Shown here in pieces: positions 6,030 through 42,816 of a DNA stretch of 58,841 nucleotides. Position 1 is the first letter of the stretch. Each line of letters begins with the position of its first letter. Position numbers and translations under genes: made by a program. The stretch is from the NCBI RefSeq assembly GCF_000315625.1, contig NW_005434558.1:1-58841 (forward strand), in the 5' to 3' direction. A model generated the notes under the pieces. The model was not told the DNA's origin. It made no database searches and was given only the letters and a program-made list of their open reading frames with translations. Origin of the DNA: Guillardia theta CCMP2712. Its lineage: Eukaryota; Protista; Cryptophyta.

Positions 6030-9000
6030 ATGGCTTACAGTATGGCGGGGTTGTTGGGCATGGCAGTGTCTCTGGTATGCCTTGCGCCTCCTCCTGGCAT
6101 CGAAGCCTTTGCTCCCTACTTGCCTCTTGTACCCTCTCACAGACAGCTGCCCCTTGCTTGCAGCCAAAGGACGAGGAGCTCAGTCCGACCATCCCTGTCG
6201 AGGTACGTGAACGTGGAATGTGAGTTATGGCTGTAAGCGATGAGTATCACACGACAAGGTGGACATGCTGGGATACACATTCCACCCTTGATGTGCAGAC
6301 CATGAAGTAGAGGTGTATGAAGATGAAGAGAGGTGGGCATAGAATACAGTGGCACCATTGATTACGATGAGGAATGCCAGAGTAGCATTGGCGCAAGTTG
6401 TGCAGTATGCTTGTGAGGTTACCAACCTGTTAATGATTGTTTCTTTTCATCGACCAGGGCAGCAAAGCGTGAGTCGCAAGACGGGACAGACTCTTTGACT
6501 CCCCGTAACAAAGCCATTGAAGACGCAACCAAGAATTATGAGAAATTGAACCAAGAGTTGACAAACGCAATGAAAACTGGAGATCCGAGACTTTTGGAGC
6601 TTGACAATCAAGTGAAACAAAGTAAGCTTGTACTGATATTTGCAAGGTCAAGCACAGAACTTTCGGAGGCTGAGAGCACAGGAGACGAGATCAAGATCGC
6701 CAGGGCTCGTCAGAGAGTCAATGAGGCGAAGCTAAGCTTGCTGGTGTGCCAGAGGGAGGGAGAGCTGTTGGAGGCTGAGGGCACAGGAGACGAGATCAAG
6801 ATCGCCAGGGCTCGTTTGAGAGTCAGGGAGGGAGAGCTGTTGGAGGCTGAGGGCACAGGAGGCGAGATCAAGATCGCCAGGGCTCGTCAGTCAGTCACGG
6901 AGGCGAAGCTAAGCTTGCTGGTGTGCCAGAGGGAGGGAGAGCTGTTGGAGGCTGAGGGCACAGGAGACGAGATCAANNNNNNNNNNNNNNNNNNNNNNNN
7001 NNNNNNNNNNNNNNNNNNNNNNNNNNNNNNNNNNNNNNNNNNNNNNNNNNNNNNNNNNNNNNNNNNNNNNNNNNNNNNNNNNNNGCTAAGCTTGCTGGTG
7101 TGCCAGAGGGAGGGAGAGCTGTTGGAGGCTGAGGGCACAGGAGACGAGATCAAGATCGCCAGGGCTCGTTTGAGAGTCAGGGAGGGAGAGCTGTTGGAGG
7201 CTGAGGGCACAGGAGACGAGATCAAGATCGCCAGGGCTCGTCAGAGAGTCAATGAGGCGAAGCTAAGCTTGCTGGTGTGCCAGAGGGAGGGAAAGCTGTT
7301 GGAGGCTGAGGGCACAAGAGACGAGATCAAGATCGCCAGGGCTCGTGTGCCAGAGGGAGGGAGAGCTGTTGGAGGCTGAGGGCACAGGAGACGAGATCAA
7401 GATCGCCAGGGCTCGTCAGAGAGTCAATGAGGCGAAGCTAAGCTCGCTGGTGTGCCAGAGGGAGGGAGAGCTGTTGGAGGCTGAGGGCACAGGAGACGAG
7501 ATCAAGATCGCCAGGGCTCGTCAGAGAGTCAATGAGGCGAAGCTAAGCTTGCTGGTGTGCCAGAGGGAGGGAGAGCTGTTGGAGGCTGAGGGCACAGGAG
7601 ACGAGATCAAGATCGCCAGGGCTCGTCAGAGAGTCAGGGAGGGAGAGCTGTTGGAGGCTGAGGGCACAGGAGACGAGATCAAGATCGCCAGGGCTCGTCA
7701 GAGAGTCAATGAGGCGAAGCTAAGCTTGCTGGTGTGCCAGAGGGAGGGAGAGCTGTTGGAGGCTGAGGGCACAGGAGACGAGATCAAGATCGCCAGGGCT
7801 CGTCAGAGAGTCAGGGAGGGAGAGCTGTTGGAGGCTGAGGGCACAGGAGACGAGATCAAGATCGCCAGGGCTCGTCAGAGAGTCAATGAGGCGAAGCTAA
7901 GCTTGCTGGTGTGCCAGAGGGAGGGAGAGCTGTTGGAGGCTGAGGGCACAGGAGACGAGATCAAGATCGCAAGGGCTACTTTCAATCTTGTGGATGTAGA
8001 TCTAGAGTTGTCAATTGCAACTGCCAGGAAAGCTTTGAGTCAAGCAAGAGACTTTGACCTTGTTCGTTGTCAGCGAGAGCTGGATGTAGTCACATACGCT
8101 CTTATCGCGCATCGAGGAGGGGACGGGGCAGGGAAATTTGTCGCAGGTAAGTTTGGAAGTGAACTTTTGAATGCTGTTGACTGATGCTTGCTAGGTATAC
8201 AAGATCTTGCCAACAGAGTCAACTTGAATGACGTCGTGTCGTCCTTGCAAGATTTACTTGAGGATTACCTTGACGTTGAATGGGGCTCGACATCATCAGG
8301 GGTGAAACCGAGCAAAGAATTCAGTGCCATGAATCCAATCGACGTAATTGTGCGGGAAGCACGTCGAGTCAAGGATGCTGTTTACTTGTGCATGATTGAA
8401 GCTTGTTCCGGCAGCGGAAAATCGCTTTGCGCTGCTGATTTCTTTGTTCGAAATTCAAAAGACTGCATGTACTTTCTCTTCAATCCCTCCCAGCAGGTCA
8501 GCAAGCAGAGCATATACCAGTGTGTAACAAGTATCACGAACCTCATGAGCATGGCCATAAATAGTGACCTTTGCTTGTTGGCAATGGCTTCAGGTCCCGA
8601 ATTGCGTACTGAAATGTTAACTGCGATAGATTTTGATGTCAAGACTAGTGGGCAGAAATGGCACGTGCTGGGAACTCTGGGCTACTTGTGGAATGAGACG
8701 AAGTCAGTTGCTCCAGTTTCTGTGGAGGAGGCCATGAAGTGGAGAAGGAGGTGGGTTCTTATAGATGAGACCATCCCACCTGATCCGCATAAGACCTATC
8801 TGTTCTCACCGTCGGCTAAGCTGGTACTGTATAAGAGGATTTTGACAAATGCAAAGATTCACTGTATCACGCTGGGGACGAATACTCTGGTCATGAATTT
8901 CAATCAGAACTCCAAGAGCTCTGACTATAGTCGCAATGAAAAGCGAAGAATGTACTGCTTTACACATCGCTCGCTTCCTCGATACGTGCCGTCATCGAGC

Positions 9001-10230
9001 AAGGACAAAGAAATATTGGAGAAGGTTTTCGGACAGGCTCATGTTCCTGTACTTCTGGACAACGTGAACCCATGGCTCTGCTCACTCTTCTTGAATCGCC
9101 TGAAGGATGAGAGTGAGACCGAACCATCATTGTGGATCCGAAAGATCTCGAGCTTGGTCCTGGAAGAAGCCAAGATGGAGAAACCGAGCTTAAGTGACGA
9201 ATCTATCTACTGCATGTTTCAAGTAGCTGCACATCAACCTGTCTCTCAGTTGCAGATCTCCAAAGGCTTTGCACAGTTGAACGTTTGGAAGGAGGACGTG
9301 CCTCCGCGAGGTAGTAGACAGACAATCGTTGCAATCTTGAAAAGCTCAAAGACAGAAGATTTGATAATCGAGGGAACTTCTCTCCCGCTGCTCACCTCGA
9401 GGTTCCCTTCTGCTGTGCATGATCCCATCACCATGGCTATTTGTGCGGGGGGAGGACAACCTTTCTCTGACCGATCAGCGCTGGAGGTCTTACAGACGAT
9501 CCATGAAGAGATGGCGAGTGGGAATGATCCTATAAGCGTGGATGCGTTCAAGCGAGATCCAAACGTGCTGGAGTCTTTCGGGGCAGTTGTGATGATGATC
9601 AGCAGCTGGTCTCTCCCGCAGGATCTTCTGAGAAACATCGCATTTCATTGCGGCATAACAGACGAGAGAAAAGTAGAACAAATCCTGGCTGCTGTCCCAA
9701 GCAAACAAGGCTTCATGCAGATTCTAGCTTCCTGCATGTCCAACTTAGTTCCTGTGCGGTTGGGCGAGGAGAATGAACTTGCCGGGGTCTTGGGTTTCTA
9801 CACTCGTAACCGGGACAGAGACCGCAGAGGTGGGACCTTCGCTGGACCAAGTTCTGCGCACTTGAAGGGAGGAATAGAATTCAAGAATTGGAATTCTTCA
9901 CTTTCATCGACACAGTTGTCCAGCGCAATCTCTGGTCTGTTGGAGCGTAACTTGGACATTATTGTGTGTATGGTGCCGGGGTTAACAGAAAATGCTCTTG
10001 AGGGATGTATGAGGACATTGAGCCGCAAGAGCGAGTGGCTGGTGCTGCATCACACGGATACAGGCTGGACCGCCTCTTCATTTGGAGCGGTCGCATCTGA
10101 GGACATGAATGCCAGTCAAGACGAGAAAGTCGTAGATGGTCAAGACAAGACTGATGCTGTCAGGCAACAAATTTTGATGGTCATCGAGATTGGAACAAAG
10201 ACTCTTCCATTCTGCGGAGTGAGGATGTAG
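6030..10230 (+). CDS. Crinkler-like (CR-type) P-loop NTPase + REase-like protein with N-terminal bipartite (signal + plastid transit) presequence and helical repeats; frameshift and gap in the repeats
   Basis: Exon 1 is 6030-6202 (MAYSMAGLLGMAVSLVCLAPPPGIEAFAP...). GT-AG intron 6203-6457 joins in frame to ORF 6495. GT-AG intron 8147-8194 joins in frame to ORF 8188-10230. Walker A is EACSGSGKS, Walker B is WVLIDE, then LGTNT; the C-terminus has NVLESF...DRDRRGGTF...GIEFKN (ExK). A 35-nt deletion near 7346 shifts the frame. Confidence 0.75.
6660..7980 (+). repeat. Coding tandem repeat of mixed 105-bp (35 aa) and 72-bp (24 aa) units
   Basis: EGELLEAEGTGDEIKIARARQRV followed by either NEAKLSLLVCQR or R. 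Units are near-identical at DNA level; the array spans an assembly gap. Confidence 0.95.
6977..7084. other. Assembly gap (N run) inside the repeat array
   Basis: Run of N; repeat copy number and frame across it are unknown. Confidence 0.99.
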
Positions 10231-10880
10231 GAGCGGGCACAACTTGGGTCGACAAGGTTGATCGAGGCTGCAAACTTTGCTGTTGCAATGAAATTGTGTG
10301 TAGCTAGAGGATGAAGAGGCGGTGTTGAGAGTAAAGCTTTTTTTGGCTGGAGGAGGGGCCGTTACTGCATGCTCACCCCAAGATTGCATAGAATCGAGCT
10401 CATTCTCGCTCCCCCCGCGTCACACTTGATTCTTCATTCTGGCAGGCCTTGAGAGCGAAACACTGTCTCGATGAACCTCTTCGAGCTGCTTGCTCGGATG
10501 TGATCGGTTTGCGACAAGGGGTCAGGTAGACTCTCAGACTCCCAGTGAGCTCATCAATGAAGGGAAGAATGGAATCGTTGTTATCTTGGGTTCGTGGGAG
10601 CCCAGCCAGCAAGTCCAACCTGACGACTTCAAAGCGCGTCACGGCGCAGACATTGGAAGATGTTGCGACTGAATTCGCACGTAGCGTAGGCGGCTTGGAT
10701 CTGTTCGGAAGTTGTAACAGGGCCACTGGGGTCGAGGGAGAAACTTCATCTTGACCGCTGAGAGCGTCAGGAGGCTTGTCAATCTGTGAACTTTTGACGT
10801 GGCAGCGCTCAGTAATGGCGCACTTGCTGCTACCGAGGGTCAGTGCCAACCAACGAATCAGGCGACTGCTGAGTTCCTCA

Positions 10881-11586
10881 GCTCTTGTCGCTCATGGCAG
10901 CTCTTGTCGCTCACGGCAGCTCTTGTCGCTCACGGCAGCTCTTGTCGCTCATGGCAGCTCTTGTCGCTCATGGCAGCTCTTGTCGCTCAGGGCAGCTCTT
11001 GTCGCTCACGGCAGCTCTTGTCGCTCATGGCAGCTCTTGTCGCTCATGGCAGCTCTTGTCGCTCACGGCAGCTCTTGTCGCTCAGGGCAGCTCTTGTCGC
11101 TCATGGCAGCTCTTGTCGCTCATGGCAGCTCTTGTCGCTCATGGCAGCTCTTGTCGCTCACGGCAGCTCTTGTCGCTCATGGCAGCTCTTGTCGCTCATG
11201 GCAGCTCTTGTCGCTCATGGCAGCTCTTGTCGCTCAGGGCAGCTCTTGTCGCTCACGGCAGCTCTTGTCGCTCATGGCAGCTCTTGTCGCTCATGGCAGC
11301 TCTTGTCGCTCATGGCAGCTCTTGTCGCTCATGGCAGCTCTTGTCGCTCATGGCAGCTCTTGTCGCTCATGGCAGCTCTTGTCGCTCATGGCAGCTCTTG
11401 TCGCTCATGGCAGCTCTTGTCGCTCATGGCAGCTCTTGTCGCTCACGGCAGCTCTTGTCGCTCATGGCAGCTCTTGTCGCTCATGGCAGCTCTTGTCGCT
11501 CATGGCAGCTCTTGTCGCTCATGGCAGCTCTTGTCGCTCATGGCAGCTCTTGTCGCTCATGGCAGCTCTTGTCGCTCATGGCAGCT
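10881..11586. repeat. 19-bp minisatellite (GCTCTTGTCGCTCA[T/C/G]GGCA), about 37 copies
   Basis: Direct inspection; only one position varies and there are no spacers. Confidence 0.97.
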
Positions 11587-11661
11587 ACAAAGTGGAGCTA
11601 TATCTCCCCGAGTCAGCGAGTAGCCTTGAAGCCGTTCCCCATCTCTGAAATCGAGTGGACC

Positions 11662-12506
11662 TTTCAAGGGGTTATCGAACTATTTGGAAAATCAAATCAT
11701 AGTTTGCCATGAAACGATGTATGTTTCAAACCATTCGACTCATAACCCTCGTAAGGCACTATGTAAATTGGGGTACATCAAGAAGTTCAGTTCGCAGATA
11801 CTTTTGAAATGATCTCGAAATAGTTTTGTAGGCCCCTCGCAGCCAGGCAGTTCAACGGCAGGCGGACAGCAGAATGGAGGCAGCAGCATGGGAGTGTGCT
11901 CGGCGGCTATTCGTGACATGCGATCGCAACATGTTGGGAAAGCTTAGCTTGTGAGTTCAACTTCAAGATGATGAATTGCAATGCTTCTCAGCAGCAGCTC
12001 CAGGCTCTGTTGCGGTGTTGTGTGTTGTTTTGTTTGTCCGTCCCTTTTCTCAATGTCAAACAGTCTGTCTTGCCGCACTTGGACCTCAGTTTTTCATCCC
12101 CTGACTTGACCGCTTCACTGTGGCAGAGACGAGCTAGTGCGATATGTGGAGGAGTTGAAGAAGATGGACATCATCGACATCGACGAGACTTACATCGTCG
12201 AGAAACTGCAAGAAGGGCAGCTGGAGCAAATCAAGTGAGTGGCAAAACGAATCATACGGTACTGCAGGCGGGCAGGAGGGAGAGTGAAGCCTTGAAGAAG
12301 CGTTCATATGGAGGCAGGAGGACAGAATTGAGGGAGGATGGCGTAGGAGAGTAGTTGCGATGCAGGAAGTGAGGATGGTATGGGGATGAGGAGTAGTATT
12401 GAGAATATTGGACGAGCAAGGAATTCACAATCCCGGCAGTTTCGAGCAATTCAAGGAATGGAGCCAAGGCCCGAATAATGCAGTAAGACGGAGAACTTTC
12501 TCTGCT
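11662..12506 (+). repeat. Diverged dispersed repeat, copy B (longer than copy A at 4588-5162)
   Basis: Collinear with 4588-5162 but with extra internal segments; retains coding-like fragments (ELVRYVEELKKMDIIDIDETYIVEKLQ). Confidence 0.85.
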
Positions 12507-12735
12507 CTTCAATTCCCTCCTGTTCTCTTGTTCTCTTGTCCATCTTTCTCATCCCCCCCCCTTCCCCCGCCCTTTCCCCCCCCACCACCACCACACCTCC
12601 AATGATGAATTCAAGGCATTAGTCTTTCAAGTTTCTCTGCCTCTCAGACCTTCACACCCTTATGTCGTGATGACTCTATGCTGTTTTGACTGTCTTGAGC
12701 TTATCGTGTGAAGATCCTTCACACTCCTCTCACCA

Positions 12736-13203
12736 ATGAAGGTGCACAGACCGACCTGACGAGTTAACCTTGGCAGAGCGAACAAGTCATCCAGGGGAAT
12801 GTGGATCCTTATGGGAACAATAGCGTGCTGCCAAGGCGGTGAGCTCTGTCGGATCAGAGAGGCAGAGGAGACTGACCGGAGATTGCTGGCAGGTTTGCAG
12901 ATGCTTCACTTCACAAGAGCAACGTCAAGATTCAGCATCCTTGCTTCACCACGACCGCGCATGACATCGGGTTCAAGAAACCGCAGCAAGTAGATATGCC
13001 GGTGAAGTGGAGGGGGAAGGAAGGAGTGTTCACGCGAGAGTTCGAGATGCGAGAACCTGGCAAGACAGGCATTACCGTCAATACGTAGCATCTCCTTCGT
13101 AACGTCTTTATCCTCTGACATGTTGCATAGATATGTGGATAGAGGGCTGAGGACCGGGAAAACCAAGTCAAAGGTTCACAAAGAGCTGGACGTGGATTTC
13201 TAG
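12736..13203 (+). CDS. PIERCE1/2 (DUF4490, FAP182-like) ciliary microtubule inner protein, multi-exon
   Basis: Spliced peptide ...LPRRFADASLHKSNVKIQHPCFTTTAHDIGFKKPQQVDMPVKWRGKEGVFTREF...YVDRGLRTGKTKSKVHKELDVDF*. It resembles the family pattern QHPxYxT...G...P...MP..W.G..G.FT..F...GL.T. Start codon uncertain. Confidence 0.65.
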
Positions 13204-13408
13204 ACGAGAGTAAAACAAAAAAATTGTACAACTTATTCAGCTTGTCAAACACTCAGTGCCAAATGTCCTTTATTGTCTCATTTTGCTGTTACAGTTGTTG
13301 TTTAAAAATTTAATCCTTAAGCGACATACCTGTTCAAAGTTGTGTCAGACTCTTCACGTGATAAGCAAACGAATGCACCTTCCTCCCTGCTAGTGGTGCA
13401 TCCAATGT

Positions 13409-13974
13409 TTAAAGTCCGCAGCAGCCGAGTCCAAGGCATCCCTTGCTAGAGGAGGAAGCTTTCGCCTGCTGCCCTGTCAGCCATCCTCCAACCATTCCTT
13501 CCTTCCTCACAGCCTCGACGGCCTTGGGCTTGTTGTTTTTCTTGAGGCACTTGCACCTATCAGACGATCAGCAACGTATAGACAGCTCTTTATCGCCTCC
13601 ACTCACTCCTCAAGAGCCCGGAAGGCGCCGTAGGCAGCAGCAGCGAGAAGACCCATGGGAGAGACAACAGCCTTGAACACAGTGCCGACGAGGGAGGCCT
13701 GTGATCCTATCAGAGGAGACCCATGTCCAAGTTCTCAATCATGTTTACCACTGGGTTGGTGTTGGAAACGGGTTTGGCCTCAGACTGGGCCTTGCTTCTT
13801 CCGAAGCCTCCCCTCAAGCGCATGGTGTTCGCGGAAGCCATCGCAAGACGGTTAGACATGATGCTCTGCAAGCTGTCAGGTCGCAGAAGTGTGTGAGCGA
13901 TCTCTCACTTGGCTGGGGGTGGAAACAGCCAGAGCGCAACCGATCATGCACAAGAGACCAGCGAAAACCTTCAT
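13409..13974 (-). CDS. Small signal-peptide protein with MRLRGG motif and one hydrophobic helix (4 exons)
   Basis: MKVFAGLLCMIGCALAVSTPAN|LQSIMSNRLAMASANTMRLRGGFGRSK...PV|ASLVGTVFKAVVSPMGLLAAAAYGAFRALEE|CKCLKK...GCCGL*, joined by three short GT-AG introns that keep the frame. Confidence 0.65.
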
Positions 13975-15475
13975 TCCTGTTCCGGCCGTTGTCAAGAATT
14001 CATCATCAACAATCAAGCAAAAAAAGATTGTAATCGATTTGTGTGAGATAGGAGCAGCGCAAAGAAGACATCAGCAATCAAATACAACTCTATTCCAGTA
14101 TAATTGATTCACAAGAACATTCAAAACACTCTCGAGTGATCCGTCTGCTCGCTTTTACCCGAGCGTAAGTCTTGACTAAGGACGGCCACTCATTCCTAAT
14201 TCCCCTTTTAATGTCTCGAGAGATGCCCTCTATCTCCCTGTCCTAACACCAGGGCCCTTTTAAACTCTGATCGAGGATGTCTAACTATTGTTTGCCTCTA
14301 CAACAGCAATATGTCCCGTTTTCACAATTGCACGACAGCCACCCCTAGAGTGCAGAAAAATTGAAGATGTCGATAGACCCACAAAGACGAGCACAACAAT
14401 CGGGGCTGTGCAACATTCACACGAATACAACAGGAAAAACTAATAACAACTCAAAATCGCAGAGAGATTGCATACAAAAGTCGCACTAAACAGTAAGGTA
14501 GGGGCAGAGGACGTGCTGAAGTATTACAGACATTCATTCGTCGGAAACGAGGTTCTAAACAGAAGACCGAGCTCAGAAGCATACACGTAGGCCAAGAACA
14601 TGGACGTGAGGAGATTCAAGAGCAGATGCGACAAGAAATCTGACTGCGCCATGCCTCTGCCGCTTACCGGAACTCGCCATTGCTGAGGGAGGAGGGATCC
14701 TGTAACCGCTTGGCGGCAGAGGTTTTTTTACTCTATGGAATCTTCAAATGTAGCTTGTGAAATGTACAGGTGCAACCCCAAATTACCTAGAATTTAATGA
14801 AAATATTATCATGATAATCGAAATTCACAACCTCAAAAGACCCTACCGGTAAAGGACGCGGCTGAAAAACTTGTCAGAAGGACATCAAATGTGGGCCATA
14901 GGATGCTGATAAATTAGGGGTAGGGGTAGTCAAAAGGGGGGTAGAAAAATATGAATCGGGGACTGAAAGTGAAATTGGTGGGTGGGGGTTTAGACATCAA
15001 TAAAGAAATGCGATGTTTTCAGGATACTCGCAGAGGGGTATGTCTGGAGAATGGGGGTGCTGTGTTGATAGTAGGGGTAGGGTGTTTCACTTGAGGGGTA
15101 GTGGAAAATGGAGGGTAGTGGGTACTGATCCGGGGGAGAAGAACCTGAGGAAAACAGGGGGGGGAGGTATCAAGGGGTGGGGTACTTCAGTGTTGTCTGG
15201 GGGGGTACATTCATGATGGGACATTATCCCTAGTTTGGGTGGTTGTGGGGAGTCTTTTTGTCAGCTGGCGAGGCAGACTCGGATTCGATCGAACAAAAAA
15301 GACAGCAAGAACAAACCCTCGATTTCCGACAACTGCCACCAAAATTAACTGATATCTTCATATGAAATGTATCAATTTTTAATTACTTAACTGGAAGGAG
15401 GAAAAGGAGGAAAGGGTATGATGAGCCTCAGTCGGAGTAGCCAACAACGGTCCGGTCCGCCTCACTACAAAACTG

Positions 15476-15815
15476 AGTGACTAGCCGTTTGGCCTGTGCG
15501 ACAGTGCCACGGTCAGGGTCAAGCCTCCTCGTCTCTCCTGATTGTCCTCGTCACTGCTTTTTAACTTAACTTTGAGTAAAGGAAGCCGTCACGGTAGAAC
15601 TCGGAAGGCTCCGGAAGACTCCGGGCGGGGCCGACTGGCCGGGCCGCCGCCGGGCTGCGCGGCCATCGAAACTGACCGGCAAAGCCTTTTCATTTACTCA
15701 AAGTTAAGTTAAAGATCAGTACGAGGACAATCCGGCCCTGAGAGTCGAGGAGCCGCTGGCTCAACGGTTGACACTGGCCTGACACTGTCCGATCAGGCTG
15801 TACAGCCTAGTACTC
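15476..15815. mobile_element. Two inverted copies of a ~110-bp short interspersed element (MITE or mini-Helitron-like) around a GC-rich spacer
   Basis: GATTGTCCTCGT...TTTAACTTAACTTTGAGTAAA (15540-15580) is near reverse-complementary to TTTACTCAAAGTTAAGTTAAAGATCAGTACGAGGACAATC (15693-15732). Further fragments at about 23516-23533 and 43890-43932. Confidence 0.7.
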
Positions 15816-16280
15816 GGAGGCTTGAACCGTGACCACCCCGGGCCCGGCGGCGCCGGGCAGGGGCCGGCACTGCCGGCCGGGCGCCCGGCGCGCACTGCCG
15901 GGGGGCGGCCGCGCACTCGGAGGCTGCGGCCCGGGCGCAGAGGCCGCGTGATGCCAGTGACAAGCCGCGGGCCGCGTGACCGTCACGACTGAGGGGACTC
16001 GGCTCGAAGAATGTGACGGCGCCGCCGGCGGCCGCAAGGGCCGGGGAGGCTCAGCGTGTGCCACGCACGGTACTACGGTACGGTCCGATCCTGACTCCGT
16101 GGCAGCAGGCGGGCACTCAGAAAGCCCGGCGCCCGGCCGCGGGCCCTTGCGGCCGGAACTTCGGAACTTGAGTGATGAGTTCACGGCATGCACCGTCACG
16201 CGTGACTGAGCCTGTTCCGATCATGATTGATTGGCGGGCCCACCGCAGTGACTCTGTGACTCGGCGGATTCAAGCCTGTG
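15600..16280. repeat. GC-rich patch of short palindromic motifs (also about 34780-35110, 39330-39900, 43680-44100)
   Basis: Dense CCGG, GGCC, GCGGC, CAGTG/CACTG, ACGGT, GAGTC/GACTC, TCGGA motifs; no credible ORF. Confidence 0.7.
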
Positions 16281-16967
16281 CCAGACTGCGGCGACTTTTC
16301 CAATACTTTTCCTTTAGTTTTTTGTCAATTTTATTGTTTCGCAATATTTCAAACCACAAACTTCCATGGCAAGGCGTACATGCTGCTCTCGAACCAGGCT
16401 TGTGCTTGCCCCACTCCTTGATCAGAGCACTGAAATCACTTGATGACTGTGTTGTCTCTTCAGTTGTGTGCTTGTACTCGCTACATGACTCTACTGTCTC
16501 TTCATGGATGCACTTGTACGTGCTTCATGACTGAGCTGCACTATGGCTTGTGCTACCTCAGTGCCATTGTGCTTCATAACTGAAGAGGACGCGTGGATGG
16601 GCGGAACACCCTCCCAGGGTGCCCTTCCCTCTTTACACACGACCTTTCTGCTTTTACCCAGGGGCGAGCCATATTTCAAGTCATCCATTGTAAATGCTCA
16701 AAATCGCAATGGACTCGGCCATCATGAAAGTCAATGCGTTCGCGCGCGGTACTGACGGCAACCGAGCACGCCCTTCTGCATTCCGAATCGGAGAACGGGG
16801 CCGCACCGTGCGGCTCACCTCTGACAACATGGGCTACACGACAACATGGGCTACACGACAACATGGGCTACACGCCGATTTGAACATGCTAACAAGGCAG
16901 GGGAGGAGATTGAGGGCGAGAGAGATGTAGAGATAAGGAGAGAAGAAGAGAACGCGAGACGAAGACG

Positions 16968-32569: not shown

Positions 32570-33574
32570 GGGCTGAGGCTGCCACTACCCCACCTGTCAA
32601 ACATACCTTATGCTGCTGGAAGAACTACGGGTGCCATAACACTACCCCACCCATAAAATTTCGCTTTCAAGAACCCCATCTCTTTATTCCATGTACCCGC
32701 ATGTTGTCAGCAAAAAGTACCCCTACCTACCCCTGGATTCCTATTAATATTATTAAAATAACTCAAGTGATGCTTCAGATTTCATCAGAGCTGCTTTCAA
32801 ATTGGTTCAGAATGTTCCAAAATCTCACAAAAGGTTTGAAATATATTTCTGTTTACAGTGAACCGCCAAGTGTGAGGTGGGTAGGGTGGGTTTGGGAGAC
32901 TGCTTTCCCACAGGAGAACTAATAATGGGGGGTGGAGGGTGGAGGGTGGGGTATTTCATGATGGGGTAGTTTTACATACTGTTAGAAGAAGATTCCATCG
33001 TTCTATACGGGGTGGGTACAGTGCTTTACCTGAAGGGCCGGGTACGTTCTAGGGGGGGTAGGGGTCGAGGATTCCATTGGAAATTTCTGGAGATATAGGG
33101 GTGGGGTGGTGTACGTTGTCTTCAATGCATTGGGGTACGGTCATGAGAGAGGGTGGGGGTTCTAATAAAGGTACAGGGATTGGACCCTTCAGGGCACCTA
33201 CCCTTGTACAAATTACACCCCGTCGAATTCTAGTTTGCATCTCGTGTATTAGATCACCGGTACTTATCCATATATTCAACTCTGCAAGAGGGGGATAAAG
33301 GTACCACCGGTGTTGACCAAAAATGACGAAATGTGGGGTGGGTATGACCCCCACCATTGTTCCTACCACCCCTACCCACAGTTTTCCCGCACGCGACCCT
33401 CCCCCATCCGTCCATCCCTTGCAGAACATCTCCCTGCTTGTTCGTTCAGTGCGCATCTGTGCTTGCGTTCGCTCTGCTTGGAGCTTTCCTGTTGCGTTTC
33501 CAGCACATCTGCATCATCCTCTTCTAAGAGCTGTCTGCTTCTTTATCAAGTGGATCTCTTCCATTCTTTGGTTC

Positions 33575-34221
33575 ATGATGGGAAGACAGGTTCTTGCTGC
33601 CCTCGCACTCCTACCTCTTGCTTGGTGCTTCCAAGCTCCTACCAGCTTTCTTCCTGGAACCAGGGGCATCACTCAGCAAACATGCGCTACTCTCAGGCCT
33701 GCAGTGCTTGGGAAGATGCAGCTCGAGGCTCCCGAAAGGATTAAGATACCTGACACTTTCAACCCGGCGGAATGGGGCGTTGGGGGCGGAAAGGGAGGCT
33801 TCGGTGATGGGCTTGGTGGGTTCAAGGTTCCTGATAGCTTCAACCCAGCGGAGATGGAGAAAGAAAGGCAGGGTGGAAGAACAGCTGTGATGGACAGGCC
33901 TTCAGACAAGACTGATCCTGGGAAGAAGTACAAGGTTCTGTTGTTCAACGATGACAAGAACACAAGGCAGTACGTTATTGACACCCTAATGAAGTACATC
34001 CCTGGTATGACAGCAGACAAGGTAAGATGACGAATCTCTTCTTCATTCCGCTTGTATTTGGTTTTTCCGTGTTAACGTTTTGTCCTCAGGCTAAGGAGAT
34101 CACTGTAGCAGCGCACAACACTGGCATGGCCATCGTTGGCGTGTGGATGTACGAGATGGCAGAGGCATACAGTGATGTGCTCCGCAGTGCAGGCTTGCGG
34201 AGTGACATTGATCCTGAGTAA
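33575..34221 (+). CDS. clpS: Plastid-targeted ATP-dependent Clp protease adaptor ClpS (2 exons; intron 34022-34089)
   Basis: Signal peptide ending AWC|F plus transit peptide; KYKVLLFNDDKNTRQYVIDTL...AKEITVAAHNTGMAIVGVWMYEMAEAY. Confidence 0.92.
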
Positions 34222-34308
34222 ACTCGTTGTTTCTTTTGCCTCTAACTGCCATGCGTCTGTTTCGAAGTACCATGCGCACTAAGCTGCTGCCTCTCTATGC
34301 TCTCAGCG

Positions 34309-34340
<32 letters not shown>

Positions 34341-35118
34341 TCGAGCCACCCATGGAGGCAGTTGAAGTTTATCTTTCCTCCGCCGTACCACAAACCGTTT
34401 TCGAACTTGGGAAGTTGGTCATCCCATGTGCAATGGGCAGGCGATCACTGATACACCGCAGCAGCGCTTCCTTAGTCCCTTACAACTCAGAATCTTGACG
34501 CTCATTCTCTGTCCTCGTTCGGCTCGCCGTTTCATGATGTGTCAGGTGTGATCCGAGTTTCAGCTGAGCGTGCTCGTGAGACTCAGAGGATCAAAGATCG
34601 CCGCCGGTACGGTCACACTGCCGCCGTGAGTCGCGATGGCATGATGATGGAGAAGGCGATGCAATTACCACAACTTCAATGAAAAGTAATACTCCCGCAA
34701 ACGATGTTGCTTGCAAGGCTGTGATCAGTCACATGTCACTGGGCCAGGCTCAGGCTACTTACGGTAGTAGGCCGCTTGTACGGTCATGATTGCGGCTTGC
34801 CGGAACTCGGAGACGCCCGGCCGGGCGCCGCGCCGGCCGGCCCGGGCCCGGGGTGCGGGCCCGGCCACCGGGGCCCGGGCCCGGGCCTCCCGACCCGTAC
34901 CCGGTGACCGTACCGCCGGAGTCACGGGCCCGGGGCAGTCTGGCACGCGGCCAGTCACTGTGCGGTGGCGCGGCAAGTTGTTGTTGCAAACCACGGTGAC
35001 TCGTCGGAGTCGGACCCGCCGAAAAAAAGGCTAGTACGGTGCGGTTCTGATGCTGAGGCTACAATCGGCGCAGCCGCGGGCCGGGGGCGAACTGGCACGG
35101 CGCAGTCACGCGGCTCGC

Positions 35119-38100
35119 TGATGGAACGTATGCCAGCCGTGCCAGTCAGATATCACGCAGTGCGGCGGGCGGCCGAGTCAGTAACAAAAACTCTCCTGTA
35201 AACCAAGACGACTTACGTGTTTTCGAGGCGGGCATGTACTCGCGGCGTGTGGGTGACGGAATACAAGTTTGTTAGACTTGTACTAGTCCAAAGTCACGCA
35301 GACGTCACATCGACCTTAGTTGTAACAAGACAGTTTTTGCTCAAGACCGAGTTTAATGTACACAAAACCAGAGTTGAGGAGCACATGAGAGATAGACTGT
35401 ATGCAGGGATGTGAAACCCAAGCATCCAGACATGAGAGGACCTTAGCAAGACGGCTAGGAAAGCCCCCCTCTTCGTCCCACACGCTACATCGTCCGCCTT
35501 GCCAAACACGTAAGTCGTCTTGGTTTACAGGAGAGTTTTTGTTAACTCGGCGCTATCTGACTGGCACGGCTGGCATACGTTCCATCCTCCCCCCGAGTTT
35601 CTGAAATAGTACGTTACATCGGACGTCAGAAAGTCACACAAACAAGCTTGAAGAGAATGTCAGCAGAGTTCCAAGTCAAGATACGATGATACAACGTCAA
35701 GTTCACAGTCATGCTGAGTGGGCAATAACCATTCAAGGATTGTCCATTCTGAAGAAGAATTTCATGCAGGGCTATTAGATGGGCAGTGCAGAGATAAGGA
35801 GGATAAGATAAGAGAGTCTGAGGAGAGAACTTCGGAGTTCAGATAACAGAGAGAGAGAGAGAGAGAGCGTGCCCGCCGGCATTTGAAGACCAAAAGATAA
35901 ATTTTGAACCGTAAAGAACTTGTGACCAGAGATTGCTGCCGCGAGATGGAACATCCGTTTCAAGGCATTCGAAGATTGTTGTGCAGTTGTACCTTGTTCG
36001 CCGATCCAGAAGTAGCTCCAGTTATGCATGCCACAGCCTAGCTCCATGACATGAAAACTTCCGCCAGATCTCCTGGTAGTTCCATTTGATCCTACTCAAA
36101 GATCAAGAAAAATAAGAATCGAATCAGCTTCAAGTGCGTTTCCACACGGTTAAGCAGATATTCGACCGACCAATCTGGCTGGGGAAAGGCTTGTTTTTCC
36201 TATTCGAAGATCAATCAAACAAATTGAGGCTGAGATAGGCCTAAACAACTTGCGGCTAGAAAGAGAGCCTGATTGAAGAGAGGAGTCATCCGAATGTGTA
36301 CAGCTTGATAGAATTTGCATGAATTGTCAACAGCAACGGGAAAACAATACCAAGAAAGAAAAAACTCCAGTAAACAATTCAACTAACCAAATATAAGATC
36401 AACATGATTGAGCATGTAATCGGGGCCCATAACCGACGGAATACAAGTTTGTTAGACTTGTACTAGTCCAAAGTCACGCAGACGTCACATCGACCTTAGT
36501 TGTAACAAGACAGTTTTTGCTCAAGACCGAGTTTAATGTACACAAAACCAGAGTTGAGGAGCACATGAGAGATAGACTGTATGCAGGGATGTGAAACCCA
36601 AGCATCCAGACATGAGAGGACCTTAGCAAGACGGCTAGGAAAGCCCCCCTCTTCGTCCCACACGCTACATCGTCCGCCTTGCCAAACACGTAAGTCGTCT
36701 TGGTTTACAGGAGAGTTTTTGTTAACTCGGCGCTATCTGACTGGCACGGCTGGCATACGTTCCATCCTCCCCCCGAGTTTCTGAAATAGTACGTTACATC
36801 GGACGTCAGAAAGTCACACAAACAAGCTTGAAGAGAATGTCAGCAGAGTTCCAAGTCAAGATACGATGATACAACGTCAAGTTCACAGTCATGCTGAGTG
36901 GGCAATAACCATTCAAGGATTGTCCATTCTGAAGGATAAGGGAGATGCCTGGCGAGCTGATGCAATGACGAGAGAAGGAGGATAAGATAAGAGAGTCTGA
37001 GGACTCCGGAGAACTTCGGAGTTCAGATAACAGAGAGAGAGAGAGAGAGAGCGTGCCCGCCGGCATTTGAAGACCAAAAGATAAATTTTGAACCGTAAAG
37101 AACTTGTGACCAGAGATTGCTGCCGCGAGATGGAACATCCGTTTCAAGGCATTCGAAGATTGTTGTGCAGTTGTACCTTGTTCGCCGATCCAGAAGTAGC
37201 TCCAGTTATGCATGCCACAGCCTAGCTCCATGACATGAAAACTTCCGCCAGATCAGCTTCAAGTGCGTTTCCACACGGTTAAGCAGATATTCGACCGACC
37301 AATCTGGCTGGGGAAAGGCTTGTTTTTCCTATTCGAAGATCAATCAAACAAATTGAGGCTGAGATAGGCCTAAACAACTTGCGGCTAGAAAGAGAGCCTG
37401 ATTGAAGAGAGGAGTCATCCGAATGTGTACAGCTTGATAGAATTTGCATGAATTGTCAACAGCAACGGGAAAACAATACCAAGAAAGAAAAAACTCCAGT
37501 AAACAATTCAACTAACCAAATATAAGATCAACATGATTGAGCATGTAATCGGGGCCCATAACCGACGGAATACAAGTTTGTTAGACTTGTACTAGTCCAA
37601 AGTCACGCAGACGTCACATCGACCTTAGTTGTAACAAGACAGTTTTTGCTCAAGACCGAGTTTAATGTACACAAAACCAGAGTTGAGGAGCACATGAGAG
37701 ATAGACTGTATGCAGGGATGTGAAACCCAAGCATCCAGACATGAGAGGACCTTAGCAAGACGGCTAGGAAAGCCCCCCTCTTCGTCCCACACGCTACATC
37801 GTCCGCCTTGCCAAACACGTAAGTCGTCTTGGTTTACAGGAGAGTTTTTGTTAACTCGGCGCTATCTGACTGGCACGGCTGGCATACGTTCCATCCTCCC
37901 CCCGAGTTTCTGAAATAGTACGTTACATCGGACGTCAGAAAGTCACACAAACAAGCTTGAAGAGAATGTCAGCAGAGTTCCAAGTCAAGATACGATGATA
38001 CAACGTCAAGTTCACAGTCATGCTGAGTGGGCAATAACCATTCAAGGATTGTCCATTCTGAAGAAGAATTTCATGCAGGGCTATTAGATGGGCAGTGCAG

Positions 38101-39325
38101 AGATAAGGGAGATGCCTGGCGAGCTGAGGAGAGAACTTCGGAGTTCAGATAACAGAGAGAGAGAGAGAGAGAGCGTGCCCGCCGGCATTTGAAGACCAAA
38201 AGAGAGAGCGTGCCCGCCGGCATTTGAAGACCAAAAGATAAATTTTGAACCGTAAAGAACTTGTGACCAGAGATTGCTGCCGCGAGATGGAACATCCGTT
38301 TCAAGGCATTCGAAGATTGTTGTGCAGTTGTACCTTGTTCGCCGATCCAGAAGTAGCTCCAGTTATGCATGCCACAGCCTAGCTCCATGACATGAAAACT
38401 TCCGCCAGATCTCCTGGTAGTTCCATTTGATCCTACTCAAAGATCAAGAAAAATAAGAATCGAATCAGCTTCAAGTGCGTTTCCACACGGTTAAGCAGAT
38501 ATTCGACCGACCAATCTGGCTGGGGAAAGGCTTGTTTTTCCTATTCGAAGATCAATCAAACAAATTGAGGCTGAGATAGGCCTAAACAACTTGCGGCTAG
38601 AAAGAGAGCCTGATTGAAGAGAGGAGTCATCCGAATGTGTACAGCTTGATAGAATTTGCATGAATTGTCAACAGCAACGGGAAAACAATACCAAGAAAGA
38701 AAAAACTCCAGTAAACAATTCAACTAACCAAATATAAGATCAACATGATTGAGCATGTAATCGGGGCCCATAACCGACGGAATACAAGTTTGTTAGACTT
38801 GTACTAGTCCAAAGTCACGCAGACGTCACATCGACCTTAGTTGTAACAAGACAGTTTTTGCTCAAGACCGAGTTTAATGTACACAAAACCAGAGTTGAGG
38901 AGCACATGAGAGATAGACTGTATGCAGGGATGTGAAACCCAAGCATCCAGACATGAGAGGACCTTAGCAAGACGGCTAGGAAAGCCCCCCTCTTCGTCCC
39001 ACACGCTACATCGTCCGCCTTGCCAAACACGTAAGTCGTCTTGGCAAGATGGTTTACAGGAGAGTTTTTGTTAACTCGGCGCTATCTGACTGGCACGGCG
39101 GCTGGCATACGTTCCATCAGTGGGATGAAGAGGGGGCTTTCCTAGCCGTCTTACTAAGGTCCCCTCATGTCTGGATGCTTGGGTTTCACATCCTAGCATA
39201 CAGTCTATCTCTCATGTGCTCCCGGTCAATTCTGGTTAAGCAAAAACTGTCTTGTTACAACTAGGGTCGATGTGATATCTGCGTGACTTTGGACTAGCAC
39301 AAGTCAACAAACTTGTATTCCGTCA
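35119..39325 (+). mobile_element. Older solo LTR (TGATGG...CCGTCA) split into 35119-35253 and 39120-39325 by a nested insertion
   Basis: The two pieces join into a diverged reverse complement of the 332-bp LTR of the nested element. 5-bp TSD CTCGC at 35114-35118 and 39326-39330. Confidence 0.9.
35254..39119 (-). mobile_element. Tandem-array non-autonomous copia-type LTR element (TRIM-like): 4 LTRs and 3 non-coding internal regions
   Basis: LTRs at 35254-35586, 36435-36766, 37564-37895 and 38776-39119; internal regions about 0.8-0.9 kb. TG...CA outer ends; TSD GTGGG (35249-35253, 39120-39124). Minus-strand PBS GGTTATGGGCCC (half-tRNA-iMet type) and PPT GGGGGGAG. Confidence 0.93.
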
Positions 39326-40167
39326 CTCGCACAAACTCTGGCAAACTTGAAGGATCCGGCGGCCGGGGCAGCAGAATATGGTTTGAATTTCTGGCACAGT
39401 GCACTCAGTGCCGAACTTCCCGGCAACTTTCCCTGCAGTTCAACGGTTCAACGGTTCGCCGCGCGAACTTTGAAGGCTTCCAAAGCTGGCACCGTGTGAA
39501 GTGACGGCGGTTTGACCCGATGATCATCGGATTGGATTAACCACGCGGCGCGGCCCTATCGGCCCCGAGGCCGCCGCGCGGACGGTGAGGCCCGCAGGGC
39601 CTCTCGGATCCGGCCCGGCGGACTCGGATTCCTCACACGGTCCGCGGCGTCACAGTGCCAGTAAGGTCGGAGATCCTGTGTGTCACACCGTCACCTTGAG
39701 AGTCCGGCGCCCGGGCCGCCGGGCGGCCGGGCCCGCCGCCCGGAGTCACGAGTCGCCGCCGCGGGCCCGGCGGCCTCGGATCGGACTGTCCGCCGACCGT
39801 ACGGGGGCCGGGCCCGCCGGGCGATCATAGTAACCGTCGATGAGTGATTGATAGTTACTAGTGAAAGTTGAAGTCAGGGCCCGGCCTGGTCACACTAATA
39901 AATCATCATGAGAACCAAAGCCTCAGTACAGACGGGTTCAGTCAACACCCCATAAAAGTTTGTCACAGTTTTTTCCCGAGGACTGCCCCCCTTTTTTTTG
40001 CGTGGTTGGAGTAGCGGCTTTCGCTGCCTTTTTTCATTTCCTAGTATTATATTGAGGCGGGTTTGTAGGCTTTATCATCGTCCTCCTTTGTTTGCTCCGG
40101 TTTGCCTTTTCTTTTCAGTCAATAAAAAGCTTTAAAAAATAATAGAGTTGGGAGTTGGTTCCAAAAC

Positions 40168-42816
40168 ATGCCGAAGCGCCGAAGGACCGAGGATCCAGAC
40201 GACAGCAAGAGAGACTTAGTGAGCTTGCTGCTCGAGTCTGTCTCACAAACTCATGATATGATCAAGAGCTGCAAAGGCAAGGAGCAGATGCAATGGCTTA
40301 CTACACAACTTGAGAAGAAGGAGCTCGAGCTGAAGAATGCGGTTGAGAAGAAGGAGCTCGAGCAGAAGTATGCGGTTGAGAAGAAGGAGCTCGAGCAGAA
40401 GATCGAGAGCTGCGAAAACCAGGAGCAGAAGCAATGGCTGACTACACAACTTGAGAAGAAGGAGCTCGAGCTGAAGAATGCGGTTGAGAAGAAGGAGCTC
40501 GAGCAGAAGTATGCGGTTGAGAAGAAGGAGCTCGAGCAGAAGATCGAGAGCTGCGAAAACCAGGAGCAGAAGCAATGGCTGACTACACAACTTGAGAAGA
40601 AGGAGCTCGAGCAGAAGTATGCGGTTGAGAAGAAGGAGCTCGAGCAGAAGTATGCGGTTGAGAAGAAGGAGCGCGAGCAGAAGTATGCGGTTGAGAAGAA
40701 GGAGCTCGAGCAGAAGATCGAGAGCTGCGAAAACCAGGAGCAGAAGCGAAGGCTGACTACACAACTTGAGAAGAAGGAGCTCGAGCTGAAGAATGCGGTT
40801 GAGAAGAAGGAGCTCGAGCAGAAGTATGCGGTTGAGAAGAAGGAGCTCGAGCAGAAGTATGCGGTTGAGAAGAAGGAGCTCGAGCAGAAGATCGAGAGCT
40901 GCGAAGACCAGGAGCAGAAGCGAAGGCTGACTACACAACTTGAGAAGAAGGAGCTCGAGCAGAAGTATGCGGTTGAGAAGAAGGAGCTCGAGCAGAAGTA
41001 TGCGGTTGAGAAGAAGGAGCGCGAGCAGAAGTATGCGGTTGAGAAGAAGGAGCTCGAGCAGAAGATCGAGAGCTGCAAAGACCAGGAGCAGAAGCGAAGG
41101 CTGACTACACAACTTGAGACGAAGGAGCTCGAGCTGAAGAATGCGGTTGAGACCAAGGAGCGCGAGCTCAAAGTGGAGAAGAAGGAGCTCGAGCAGAAAT
41201 TCTTGATTCACAATTATATGGCTGGAGGTCGCTTACAGACAGGAGAAATAATGAAGTCGACTTCCGTGATTGATGCAATGGAGGATCGTTTTGTGTACGA
41301 TGAAACGAAGTTGTTTTTGGATATATCGGCAGACAGTGGGAAGGAGTCTGGGTTACGAGCATTTGAGGACGAGGATGTAAAGGAGAAGGGCATGAGAATT
41401 TTCAGCAGAAAGGGACTTCGGGAGCAGATGGACTTCATGCAAAAAAGAGTCATGCAAGCAGGAAGTTTGGGCTGGGTGTTGGGGGCACCAGGGACGGGAA
41501 AGTCTCTTACAGGCCTTGCATTCGCACTCTCCATTGACAGGGAGGTCTGGGGGGTGAGTTGGATGCATATCTCTCCTTATCCTGCAAAGGCTGTTCAGTG
41601 GATCGCTGCAAGGAAAACTGTATATGAAGCTGAATTGCAGACGACAAATGATGACTTTCTGTATGCTCTTCTGAATGGTGTGGATGATGATTCTCAGCAT
41701 GTATTCGTACTGGATGGTTTCCTGCAAGACTCGCACAAAATGTTGCAGCATATGTTGATGCGATGGCGTGAAAAAAAGAAAGAGAATAGAAGAGTGCTCT
41801 TTATTTCATCGATGCAGACCAGGTACAAGGTGAAGTGGGAAGATGATCAGGTTTGGGGCGTGGAGGTATTTCTCCTTGAGTCATGGAGACTGGAAGAGTA
41901 TCAAGAGGCAGTGATGGACGACCTGTTCTACTCTTCTGTTGAAAGGAAATTAGATGCAAACTTGTCTCGAGGATCGGTTGCTCAACGGTCATTTTCGAGC
42001 AATCTGAGCCGAGAAGATCGAATACTGTCCAAGTATTATTATGCAGGAGGATCATCAAGATACATGTTTCAGATGAGTAGTCAACAGATTATCGACGACG
42101 TTTCTAACACTGTCAAAAACGTGGGATTTCTTGAAACTCTCTCCACAAAGATAGGGCAGTACAGTGGGGCTGCAATCAATCGACTCTTTTCGATATACAA
42201 GGATCAAGACAAGTCAGAATATACTGTATTCTTAAGCAGGTATCTTACAGAGAAGATTTGCGTTCAAACAGGGTGTGAACAATTTACACGGTCTTTGGTG
42301 CATTTCTGCACAATGCATCATCCAGTTGCCAAAGGACTCATGCTTGAAGATTTGTTCTTCATGGTGGTACATCACCAAGGTTTGGCATTGCACGTGCGAG
42401 GTGAAGACGCGCAAGAAGCTTGGCAGGCTGCCCCTGTCGTGACTTGCTTGATACCTCTTACGAAAGGAGTGGTGGAGAGTCAGAGCTGCGACTTTTGGGT
42501 GCGACCACCTGATTTCAACCATCCAGGATATGATGGGGTGTTTCTTAGTAGAAGCAGGAAATTAGTACGGTTTGTACAAGTAACCGCAGCAAAAGATCAT
42601 GATCTGAAACTACAATATTTCAAGGAACTCATTGACAATCTTGTTTTAGTAGGATTTCCGGTTCAACGAATAGAAATTTGTTTCATCGTGCTCCGTAAGG
42701 ATCTAGAGTGTTTCAAAGTTTCGAAGGTCCTTGGTCAAGGATCTCTTGAGCAATATGGTTTTGCGAAAGGAAAGGAGCGAAGATCTATCAGGGTGATGGG
42801 TGTTGAGCTTATCTAA
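40168..42816 (+). CDS. Crinkler-like (CR-type) P-loop NTPase + PD-(D/E)xK-type REase protein with NLS-like N-terminus and coiled-coil repeats, intronless, 882 aa
   Basis: MPKRRR; Walker A GAPGTGKS; Walker B VFVLDG; KYYYAGGSSRYMF; GLMLEDLFF; PPDFNHPGYDGVF...VRFVQVT...HDLKLQY. These motifs are characteristic of Crinkler NTPase-REase modules. Confidence 0.88.
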   Translation: MPKRRRTEDPDDSKRDLVSLLLESVSQTHDMIKSCKGKEQMQWLTTQLEKKELELKNAVEKKELEQKYAVEKKELEQKIESCENQEQKQWLTTQLEKKELELKNAVEKKELEQKYAVEKKELEQKIESCENQEQKQWLTTQLEKKELEQKYAVEKKELEQKYAVEKKEREQKYAVEKKELEQKIESCENQEQKRRLTTQLEKKELELKNAVEKKELEQKYAVEKKELEQKYAVEKKELEQKIESCEDQEQKRRLTTQLEKKELEQKYAVEKKELEQKYAVEKKEREQKYAVEKKELEQKIESCKDQEQKRRLTTQLETKELELKNAVETKERELKVEKKELEQKFLIHNYMAGGRLQTGEIMKSTSVIDAMEDRFVYDETKLFLDISADSGKESGLRAFEDEDVKEKGMRIFSRKGLREQMDFMQKRVMQAGSLGWVLGAPGTGKSLTGLAFALSIDREVWGVSWMHISPYPAKAVQWIAARKTVYEAELQTTNDDFLYALLNGVDDDSQHVFVLDGFLQDSHKMLQHMLMRWREKKKENRRVLFISSMQTRYKVKWEDDQVWGVEVFLLESWRLEEYQEAVMDDLFYSSVERKLDANLSRGSVAQRSFSSNLSREDRILSKYYYAGGSSRYMFQMSSQQIIDDVSNTVKNVGFLETLSTKIGQYSGAAINRLFSIYKDQDKSEYTVFLSRYLTEKICVQTGCEQFTRSLVHFCTMHHPVAKGLMLEDLFFMVVHHQGLALHVRGEDAQEAWQAAPVVTCLIPLTKGVVESQSCDFWVRPPDFNHPGYDGVFLSRSRKLVRFVQVTAAKDHDLKLQYFKELIDNLVLVGFPVQRIEICFIVLRKDLECFKVSKVLGQGSLEQYGFAKGKERRSIRVMGVELI
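40261..41199 (+). repeat. Coding tandem repeat of mixed 33-bp (11 aa) and 75-bp (25 aa) units
   Basis: EKKELEQKYAV / EKKELELKNAV units interleaved with EKKELEQKIESCENQEQKQWLTTQL. Confidence 0.95.

Follow-up and report, generated by a model that had tools for sequence, protein, structure and literature searches.

Crinkler-type modules, in which a nucleoside triphosphatase (NTPase) is joined to a nuclease, are known mainly as effectors of pathogens. Here we describe two genes, A and B, of the cryptophyte alga Guillardia theta CCMP2712, in which predicted NTPase and nuclease-like domains stand behind a targeting-type leader and a stalk of helical repeats. Both lie within positions 1 to 58,841 of contig NW_005434558.1, the 58,841-nucleotide stretch that was analysed (hereafter the window). 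The commonest C-terminal arrangement of Phytophthora Crinkler (CRN) proteins is an NTPase, a helix-turn-helix and a restriction endonuclease-like (REase) domain, and a descent from transposon proteins of prokaryotes is assumed for the Crinkler/RHS-type (CR) NTPase-REase module (PMC5289972). CR proteins are present in free-living eukaryotes too (PMC5289972); for the CR toxins of Zhang et al. 2016 we rely on the summary given in that source.

Our reading, to which we assign a probability of roughly 0.6, is that genes A and B belong to two separate, expanded G. theta families of ATPase-plus-nuclease proteins with leaders for several DNA-holding compartments. Their predicted common layout runs from an exchangeable leader through a helical repeat stalk, an AAA+/STAND-like NTPase and a helical middle part to an REase-like domain at the C-terminus. 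An earlier reading of this DNA from its letters (the sequence-only reading) had placed both genes in one family of compartment-addressed nucleases with a shared architecture. The architecture of leader, helical repeats, NTPase and nuclease-like C-terminus recurs in dozens of paralogues and the leaders are diverse, but the single family does not hold, since the cores share the P-loop only.

Oomycete CRN proteins resemble the gene B core in sequence over about 90% of its length, including the Walker A motif and a C-terminal block. Gene B differs from them in having a basic patch and a repeat stalk instead of the header and in belonging to a free-living alga; some of its paralogues carry signal-peptide-type leaders, and the gene A core is not detectably CRN-like. 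Immune NTPases of the STAND/AAA+ type (Avs/AVAST and NLRs) are alike in NTPase fold (Avs5, Z-score 11.1, for gene B; NLRP2, TIR-NLR and Avs4, Z 7.9-8.7, for gene A), also combine an NTPase switch with a nuclease, and form large, fast-evolving families. Genes A and B, however, have the reverse order, with N-terminal repeats and the putative nuclease at the C-terminus; their repeats are simple charged helices and not LRR, WD40 or TPR units, and no sequence-level membership was found. The fold also matches Tn7 TnsC (Z 7.2-10.8) and Mu MuB (Z 7.3-9.5), but here the domains are fused in one protein and neither a transposase nor element ends were found. The arrays share with ER/K single alpha-helices and hendecad rods a high content of E, K and R, the absence of a long hydrophobic core and length changes by 7, 11 or 22 residues; the family A units differ in having G-x-G-D turns that suggest helical hairpins. 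Trypanosomatid RHS proteins are a multicopy family grouped with the Crinklers (PMC5289972); they gave a weak feature-based lead (an RHSP-containing cluster, score 0.78) and no significant sequence match.

Two distinct families and their expansion

Homology of the two cores was considered and rejected. BLASTP of core A against core B aligned the P-loop only (expectation value, E, of 0.39), and profile-profile comparison with hhalign (17 sequences in the family A alignment, 14 in that of family B) gave a probability of 4% for the whole alignments and of at most 20% for the N-terminal, middle and C-terminal parts taken one by one, again at the P-loop. When solved structures were searched by sequence, only marginal P-loop matches to RFC/Cdc6 turned up. 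Judged by these comparisons, genes A and B are two distinct families that are not detectably related beyond the P-loop.

Both families are large in the genome searched for paralogues (87.1 Mb in 669 contigs, the window being contig C116). The gene B core has at least 84 matches there, about 47 of them near full length and mostly free of stops, with clusters on contigs C84, C17, C19, C193 and C13. At least 55 matches were obtained with the gene A core, about 26 of them near full length, and these cluster on C155, C281 and C15. Fragments and stop-bearing copies are common in both families, many copies stand in tandem or inverted clusters, and the near-full-length copies mostly retain open frames and the invariant catalytic-type residues. 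The low GC content ascribed to the two genes applies to the cores of genes B and A (0.445 and 0.484 against 0.545 for the window) but not to their arrays (0.52 and 0.56). Matches to family A and to family B also come within 10-15 kb of one another on two further contigs (G000:C115:89254-100133 and G000:C36:560134-578594), which by a rough count is close to what chance would give.

The Crinkler-type core of gene B

Gene B has the following parts.

40168-42816, plus strand: gene B, a single uninterrupted, intron-free open reading frame of 882 amino acids (aa)
40168-40185, plus strand: basic start MPKRRR (pattern PKRRR, residues 2-6)
40312-41199, plus strand: repeat array of 11-aa and 25-aa units, split at EKKE anchors
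41230-42813, plus strand: Crinkler-type core (Walker A at 41482-41505, Walker B at 41701-41718)
42526-42600, plus strand: conserved C-terminal D..QVT..H motif
39915-43530, plus strand: duplicated block containing gene B, common to three copies on contig C13

When searched as a single sequence, the core, which makes up the last 528 residues, aligned with CRN proteins of Phytophthora, Lagenidium and Peronospora at 30-32% identity over some 90% of its residues (E 1e-64 to 1e-58). A word search with a family B profile, built from 13 cores of G. theta and Hanusia, reached Crinkler proteins at E 1e-117 and yielded the same 18 proteins again. One of the CRN matches bears the Crinkler header family PF20147; Pfam did not find this header in gene A or gene B, and the LxLFLAK motif was likewise not found in them. 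Gene B and the CRN proteins share the Walker A motif, an AGGS.RYMF block and a GGYD...VRFVQVT..H block. From this homology we conclude that the gene B core is a CR NTPase-nuclease module.

The Walker A motif of gene B reads GAPGTGKS and its Walker B motif VFVLDG, with no acidic residue after the D. The core matched the Pfam family AAA_22 weakly (E 4e-4, below the Pfam cut-off). Its AlphaFold model (mean predicted local distance difference test, pLDDT, 81) resembles Avs5 (Z 11.1), TnsC (10.8) and Cdc6/Orc1 (10.3), so that in predicted fold the gene B NTPase is AAA+/STAND-like, with the features of a P-loop NTPase. Towards the C-terminus gene B has the conserved block GYDGV...VRFVQVT..H, in which the family alignment shows the invariant residues D435..Q450-x-T452..H457. 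The assignment of this part as a putative REase follows the literature on CR modules (PMC5289972).

The duplicated block comprises gene B with about 250 bp on its 5' side and about 700 bp on its 3' side, including most of a downstream open frame of 200 aa; apart from the array, it is 93-98% identical in nucleotides to the C13 copies. A transposon structure around gene B was looked for and rejected: no terminal inverted or direct repeats were seen around the block, and Pfam matched no family, and no transposase family, in the flanking open frames. The open frame of about 200 aa lies just 3' of gene B (43019-43618, plus strand) and is copied along in all three C13 duplicates. These duplicates carry an additional open frame of 204 aa; in locus L002 the frames are at 3290-3835 and 3972-4583. 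Pfam matched neither the 200-aa nor the 204-aa frame. The former could either encode a partner of the nuclease or be an unrelated neighbour that was duplicated along with it.

The family A core

The gene A core has the Walker motifs ACSGSGKS (A) and WVLIDE (B). Its model (pLDDT 79) matches Drosophila Cdc6 in an ORC-DNA complex (Z 8.8), NLRP2 (8.7), Avs4 (7.9) and TnsC (7.8). On the strength of the model, the N-terminal half of the core is an AAA+/STAND-like P-loop NTPase.

A word search with the gene A core returned only Guillardia and Hanusia proteins. Exhaustive profile searching with family A added distant eukaryotic relatives of 650-780 aa (E 1e-10 to 1e-3), one chytrid protein among them, and the Crinkler header was found in none of the 10 distant relatives scanned. 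The model aligned with a 676-aa oomycete cluster over 526 residues at a template modelling (TM) score of 0.57; this cluster, of equal length and with 79 members from Oomycota, looks like the top feature-based match of the gene A core. A Crinkler cluster obtained a feature-based score of 0.93, which we take as a lead only. Judged from these searches, family A belongs to Guillardia and Hanusia, and oomycetes and chytrids hold distant relatives of full length; significant full-length CRN homology was not found for family A. The CR NTPase-REase identity proposed earlier for both genes is thus shown for gene B, by its CRN homology (E 1e-64; profile 1e-117), and was not detected for gene A.

The C-terminal domain of family A carries the motif Y.R..D...RDG.F.GP...GG.E.KN, in which 16 of 17 sequences have D545 and all have K563. 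The motif sits on two successive predicted strands (546-549 and 558-562), after which come a helix and a strand, and REase clusters of the Mrr type (Mrr_cat) are among the nearest structures of the whole gene A core model. This is the layout expected of a PD-(D/E)xK nuclease, and the domain would have an REase fold. The REase-like domain of the sequence-only reading would correspond to this motif layout of family A; gene A itself lacks the conserved Asp (G545), and the fold is a prediction.

Exons, leader and array of gene A

Gene A and its parts are as follows.

6030-10230, plus strand: gene A, three exons and two introns
6030-6202, plus strand: exon 1, encoding a 57-residue leader, ending ..RPSLSR before a GT donor
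6203-6457, plus strand: predicted intron 1 of 255 nucleotides (nt), GT..AG; its removal joins exons 1 and 2 in frame; retained in the orthologue L045
6458-8146, plus strand: exon 2, with a short unique part, the array (6666-7977) and a unique helical linker
6977-7084, no strand: assembly gap in the array, 108 N, in frame by chance
7302-7371, plus strand: aberrant 70-bp unit x in the array, a 35-nt loss within a 105-bp unit, causing a frameshift
8147-8194, plus strand: intron 2 of 48 nt, GT..AG; removes an in-frame TGA
8195-10230, plus strand: exon 3, the family A core of 677 aa (Walker A at 8401-8424, Walker B at 8752-8769)
9793-9888, plus strand: D..ExK-type C-terminal domain; codon 9829-9831 is GGT, giving Gly against Asp in relatives

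Intron-free genes such as gene B, and the intron-free cores of most members of these families, are unusual in this intron-rich genome. The statement that the genes have few or no introns is right in that gene B has none, while gene A has two.

In the leader of gene A, residues 5-18 form a hydrophobic core (mean hydropathy up to 2.6), followed by IEA|FAP; among the 30 residues after this site are seven S/T, five P and four K/R, and there is no D/E. Motifs of the ASAFAP type are characteristic of complex plastids of the red lineage, where F, Y, W or L at position +1 indicates the stroma and none of these the periplastid compartment (PMC12136025). Judged by inspection, the leader reads like a cryptophyte bipartite plastid-targeting sequence, in agreement with the plastid-type presequence first proposed for gene A. 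As a query against its own genome the leader exon is essentially unique. BLASTP gave no significant similarity to the leader of the family A paralogue L015/P0021, so that the likeness of the two consists of the layout and a shared exon end only. The core of gene A is contained in assemblies of transcriptome-sized runs.

In the array of gene A the repeat unit is 72 bp (24 aa) long, and some of the units have an added module of 33 bp (11 aa); the order reads L S L (gap) S L x L L S L S L. Pfam matches the array to DUF1090 repeats (E 5e-17). The assembly gap begins 29 nt into a unit and ends 40 nt ahead of a unit end; filling it with canonical units (36 + 72a + 105b nt) keeps the frame for any whole number of them. 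Through the loss in unit x, however, the frame of the leader stops in the assembly at 7377-7379, short of the NTPase.

An orthologue of gene A on a metagenome contig (L045), 94-95% identical in nucleotides, has no frameshift and a continuous frame from exon 2 to the core. It keeps the start codon, with in-frame stops upstream, the FAP motif, both introns and the Asp of the C-terminal motif. Its intron 2 has 47 nt against 48 nt in gene A, a difference that shifts the genomic frame, so that this segment must be spliced out. The array of L045 counts three units, which a short-read assembly may have collapsed, and therefore allows no conclusion on strain variation. Residue 545 of gene A is Gly, against Asp in all 16 aligned relatives, among them a 91%-identical orthologue. 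The frameshift and the loss of this Asp suggest decay unless both are sequence errors, and the assembled copy of gene A is probably decaying or misassembled. A close paralogue, L016 (G000:C124:201985-207045), has a frame break of its own within the repeat array, and CLRIGGG where related leaders have CLRMRGG. Frame breaks in the arrays are thus not unique to gene A, and in family A they reflect either frequent decay or frequent assembly error.

Leaders of the paralogues

Leaders and stalks were compared in 20 family B loci with long upstream DNA and in 12 family A loci with 1.5-kb flanks, plus database proteins. Gene B begins, within its single 882-aa frame, with the start MPKRRR that had been proposed for it; its N-terminus reads MPKRRRTEDPDD. 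Similar bare basic starts followed by acidic residues occur in family B as MAKRVRE, ..SKRGRRQ and ..NKRKRRR. Loci L028 and L029 have a signal-peptide-like start, an S/T-rich stretch and KRPRRS; three copies on C84 have ..CLRIRGG and then ..KRRRV, with a candidate signal-peptide exon upstream; L031, L036 and L040 have a hydrophobic stretch and VIRGGG; and L026 (minus strand) has a leader of about 90 aa ending in LTLRGG. Across these starts, the basic patches with following acidic residues (KRVRE, KRGRRQ, KRKRRR, KRRRV and KRPRRS) resemble nuclear localisation signals (NLS) by pattern.

In family A, the paralogue L015 has a signal peptide, the site VDA|LYP and the same exon end as gene A (..RPSL.R|GT). 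L014, L016 and L017 have a signal peptide and then ..CLR[MI]RGG (CLRIGGG in L016), and L018-L022 have no leader. L014 shares homologous stalks and 57% core identity with gene A but carries a different leader in the same open reading frame; since its mature part begins at the matching place (..GTD.L..), it looks like a natural leader swap. Leader classes differ within both sampled families, as the sequence-only reading would have it; the outcome that would have refuted that reading, paralogues lacking distinct targeting signals, did not occur in this sample. Leaders ending in LRxRGG were also considered as ubiquitin-like domains; this was dropped, as Pfam gave no ubiquitin or Crinkler match.

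Repeat stalks and their turnover

Residues 49-344 of gene B form a tandem array of 296 aa built from units a (11 aa) and B (25 aa), in the order given below and followed by two degenerate units. The three C13 copies have cores 99% identical to that of gene B, whereas their arrays differ from that of gene B and from each other; the MPKRRR start is missing in one of them.

Gene B in the window: aaB aaB aaaB aaaB aaaB a
Copy C13:938k: aaaaB aaaaB aaaB a
Copy C13:899k: aaaa(23) aaa(23) aaB a
Copy C13:745k: aaaB aaaaB aaaaB a

The repeats are thus shuffled and variable, as had been proposed: unit number and order differ among copies with nearly the same core. The description of two arrays unrelated in sequence, each of which mixes a 24- or 25-aa unit with an 11-aa module irregularly, also holds. 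Of the family B paralogues sampled, nearly all carry a charged, helical tandem array of their own, with a period of 7 (the C17, C84, C147 and C262 groups), periods of 11 and 25 (the gene B group) or spacings of 32/54, 54/65 and 47/62. The arrays of family A are mutually homologous, with G-D..K.A.AR units spaced by 24/35 in gene A, L014, L016, L022 and P0035 and by 24 throughout in L021.

An 11-aa module had been noted in both arrays. It is present there, but marks no special tie between the two genes: the 24/35 spacing is found across family A, so that the module of gene A is an old trait of that family, and steps of 11 or 22 residues recur in unrelated arrays (54/65, 32/54). Eleven residues correspond to three helical turns, and the recurrence of such steps suggests a constraint of helix phase. 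Helix geometry would better explain the 11-aa module in both arrays, and many other arrays use 7.

Proposed function and alternative explanations

In the mechanism we propose, nucleotide binding, and probably oligomerisation of the NTPase, would gate a DNA nuclease, and the charged helical stalk would act as a rigid spacer or an oligomerisation rod, its length changing through unequal recombination in helix-phase steps (7, 11 or 22 residues). The family B core stands behind a repeat stalk where Crinklers have their ubiquitin-like header. A bare basic patch would direct a protein to the nucleus, a signal peptide followed by F to the plastid, and a signal peptide with a non-aromatic +1 residue, LRxRGG and a basic patch to the periplastid compartment or the nucleomorph. 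Given the different leaders on paralogues, the families are most likely conflict or genome-policing proteins in several DNA-containing compartments. A more specific version, a compartment-resolved policing or immune system in which this four-genome cell sends paralogous NTPase-gated nucleases to nucleus, nucleomorph and plastid by leader swap while the stalk sets reach or oligomer state, is tentative, and we consider it unlikely in this full form.

Several observations weigh against the compartment-directed nucleases proposed here. The C-terminal motif of family B is D..QxT..H and not the canonical ExK, and Pfam found nothing when 10 members drawn from the two families were scanned over their C-terminal domains. 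As assembled, gene A is unable to make a full protein. Over positions 5900-6770 a single RNA read was obtained (5990-6049) and no splice joint, at a coverage that was too thin, and one contig extends 30 nt beyond the donor of intron 1, from a run that may contain DNA. Leader classes were called by eye and are not independent counts, several sampled loci being recent duplicates. No paper was found to link LRxRGG endings to periplastid leaders, and apparent signal peptides of Crinklers have been re-read as strand 1 of the ubiquitin-like header (PMC5289972).

The two families could instead be selfish multicopy genes without compartment logic, similar to trypanosome RHS or to transposon-derived pairs of the TnsC/MuB plus TnsA type that spread and decay as genomic parasites or addiction modules. 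The varied N-termini would then have arisen incidentally, by capture of exons at new insertion sites, and many of the copies would no longer be functional. Such an origin would account for the high copy number, the clusters, fragments and stop-bearing copies, the frameshifted arrays of gene A and L016, the sharply bounded 3.6-kb block duplicated with gene B, the TnsC and MuB fold matches and the intron-free cores. We nevertheless think it improbable, as neither terminal repeats nor target duplications were found around gene B, the flanking open frames show no transposase family, near-full-length copies mostly keep their frames and catalytic-type residues, and within subfamilies one leader class is found repeatedly, accompanied by a conserved basic patch, a pattern that looks selected. 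Homology of family B to oomycete effectors raises the further question of whether the proteins are toxins that are secreted or delivered, as proposed for Crinklers, by export, ejectisomes or food vacuoles, the basic patch then leading to the nucleus of the target. Part of both families has signal-peptide-like starts, an NLS-like patch occurs in most sampled family B starts, and CR proteins are known in free-living eukaryotes (PMC5289972). About half of the sampled family B copies and several of family A have no hydrophobic leader, however, a plastid-type FAP directly follows the predicted cleavage site of gene A, and neither the Crinkler header nor the LxLFLAK motif was found, all of which makes delivery as a toxin distinctly unlikely.

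The contrast of addresses would be unreal if gene A were a pseudogene whose plastid-type exon is a chance frame or part of another transcript. Its frameshift, gap and D545G change, the missing splice joint and the contig that reads through the donor, and the uniqueness of the leader exon in the genome are in keeping with this, as is the divergence from L045, which by alignment count is about 4% in exon 1 and about 3% in intron 1. On the other hand, L045 keeps the start codon, FAP and the splice sites of both introns, and its frame runs into the core without a break; the signal-peptide exon of L015 ends at the same ..RPSL.R|GT junction; and the mature part of L014, within one open reading frame and behind another leader, begins at the corresponding ..GTD.L.. 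position. We regard this explanation as very unlikely.

This one genome holds about 140 matches to two NTPase-nuclease families, which have a variable helical stalk as a header of a new kind, and at least three leader types point to different compartments by accepted cryptophyte targeting rules. Should the leaders function in the way they are read here, no earlier case would be known of one nuclease family spread over the nucleus, nucleomorph and plastid of a single cell. It would then offer a direct approach to the control or defence of several genomes in a chimeric cell, and natural leader-swap pairs for tests of targeting rules, such as L014 and gene A. If the leaders do not function so, the families are still clear cases of birth-and-death evolution with rapid repeat turnover.

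Other features of the window

About 600 bp upstream of the gene B block, at 38800-39301, the window contains nested inverted repeats with arms of 91 nt (96% complementary) and 66 nt (92%). On the minus strand, a short open frame at 13710-13871 starts with ..MSNRLAMASANTMRLRGG.. and has a ubiquitin-tail-like RLRGG motif near the protein start. At 50386-54166, a 498-bp unit is tandemly repeated in 7.7 copies with 96% matches, a GC content of about 0.75 and a strong excess of G and A on the plus strand.

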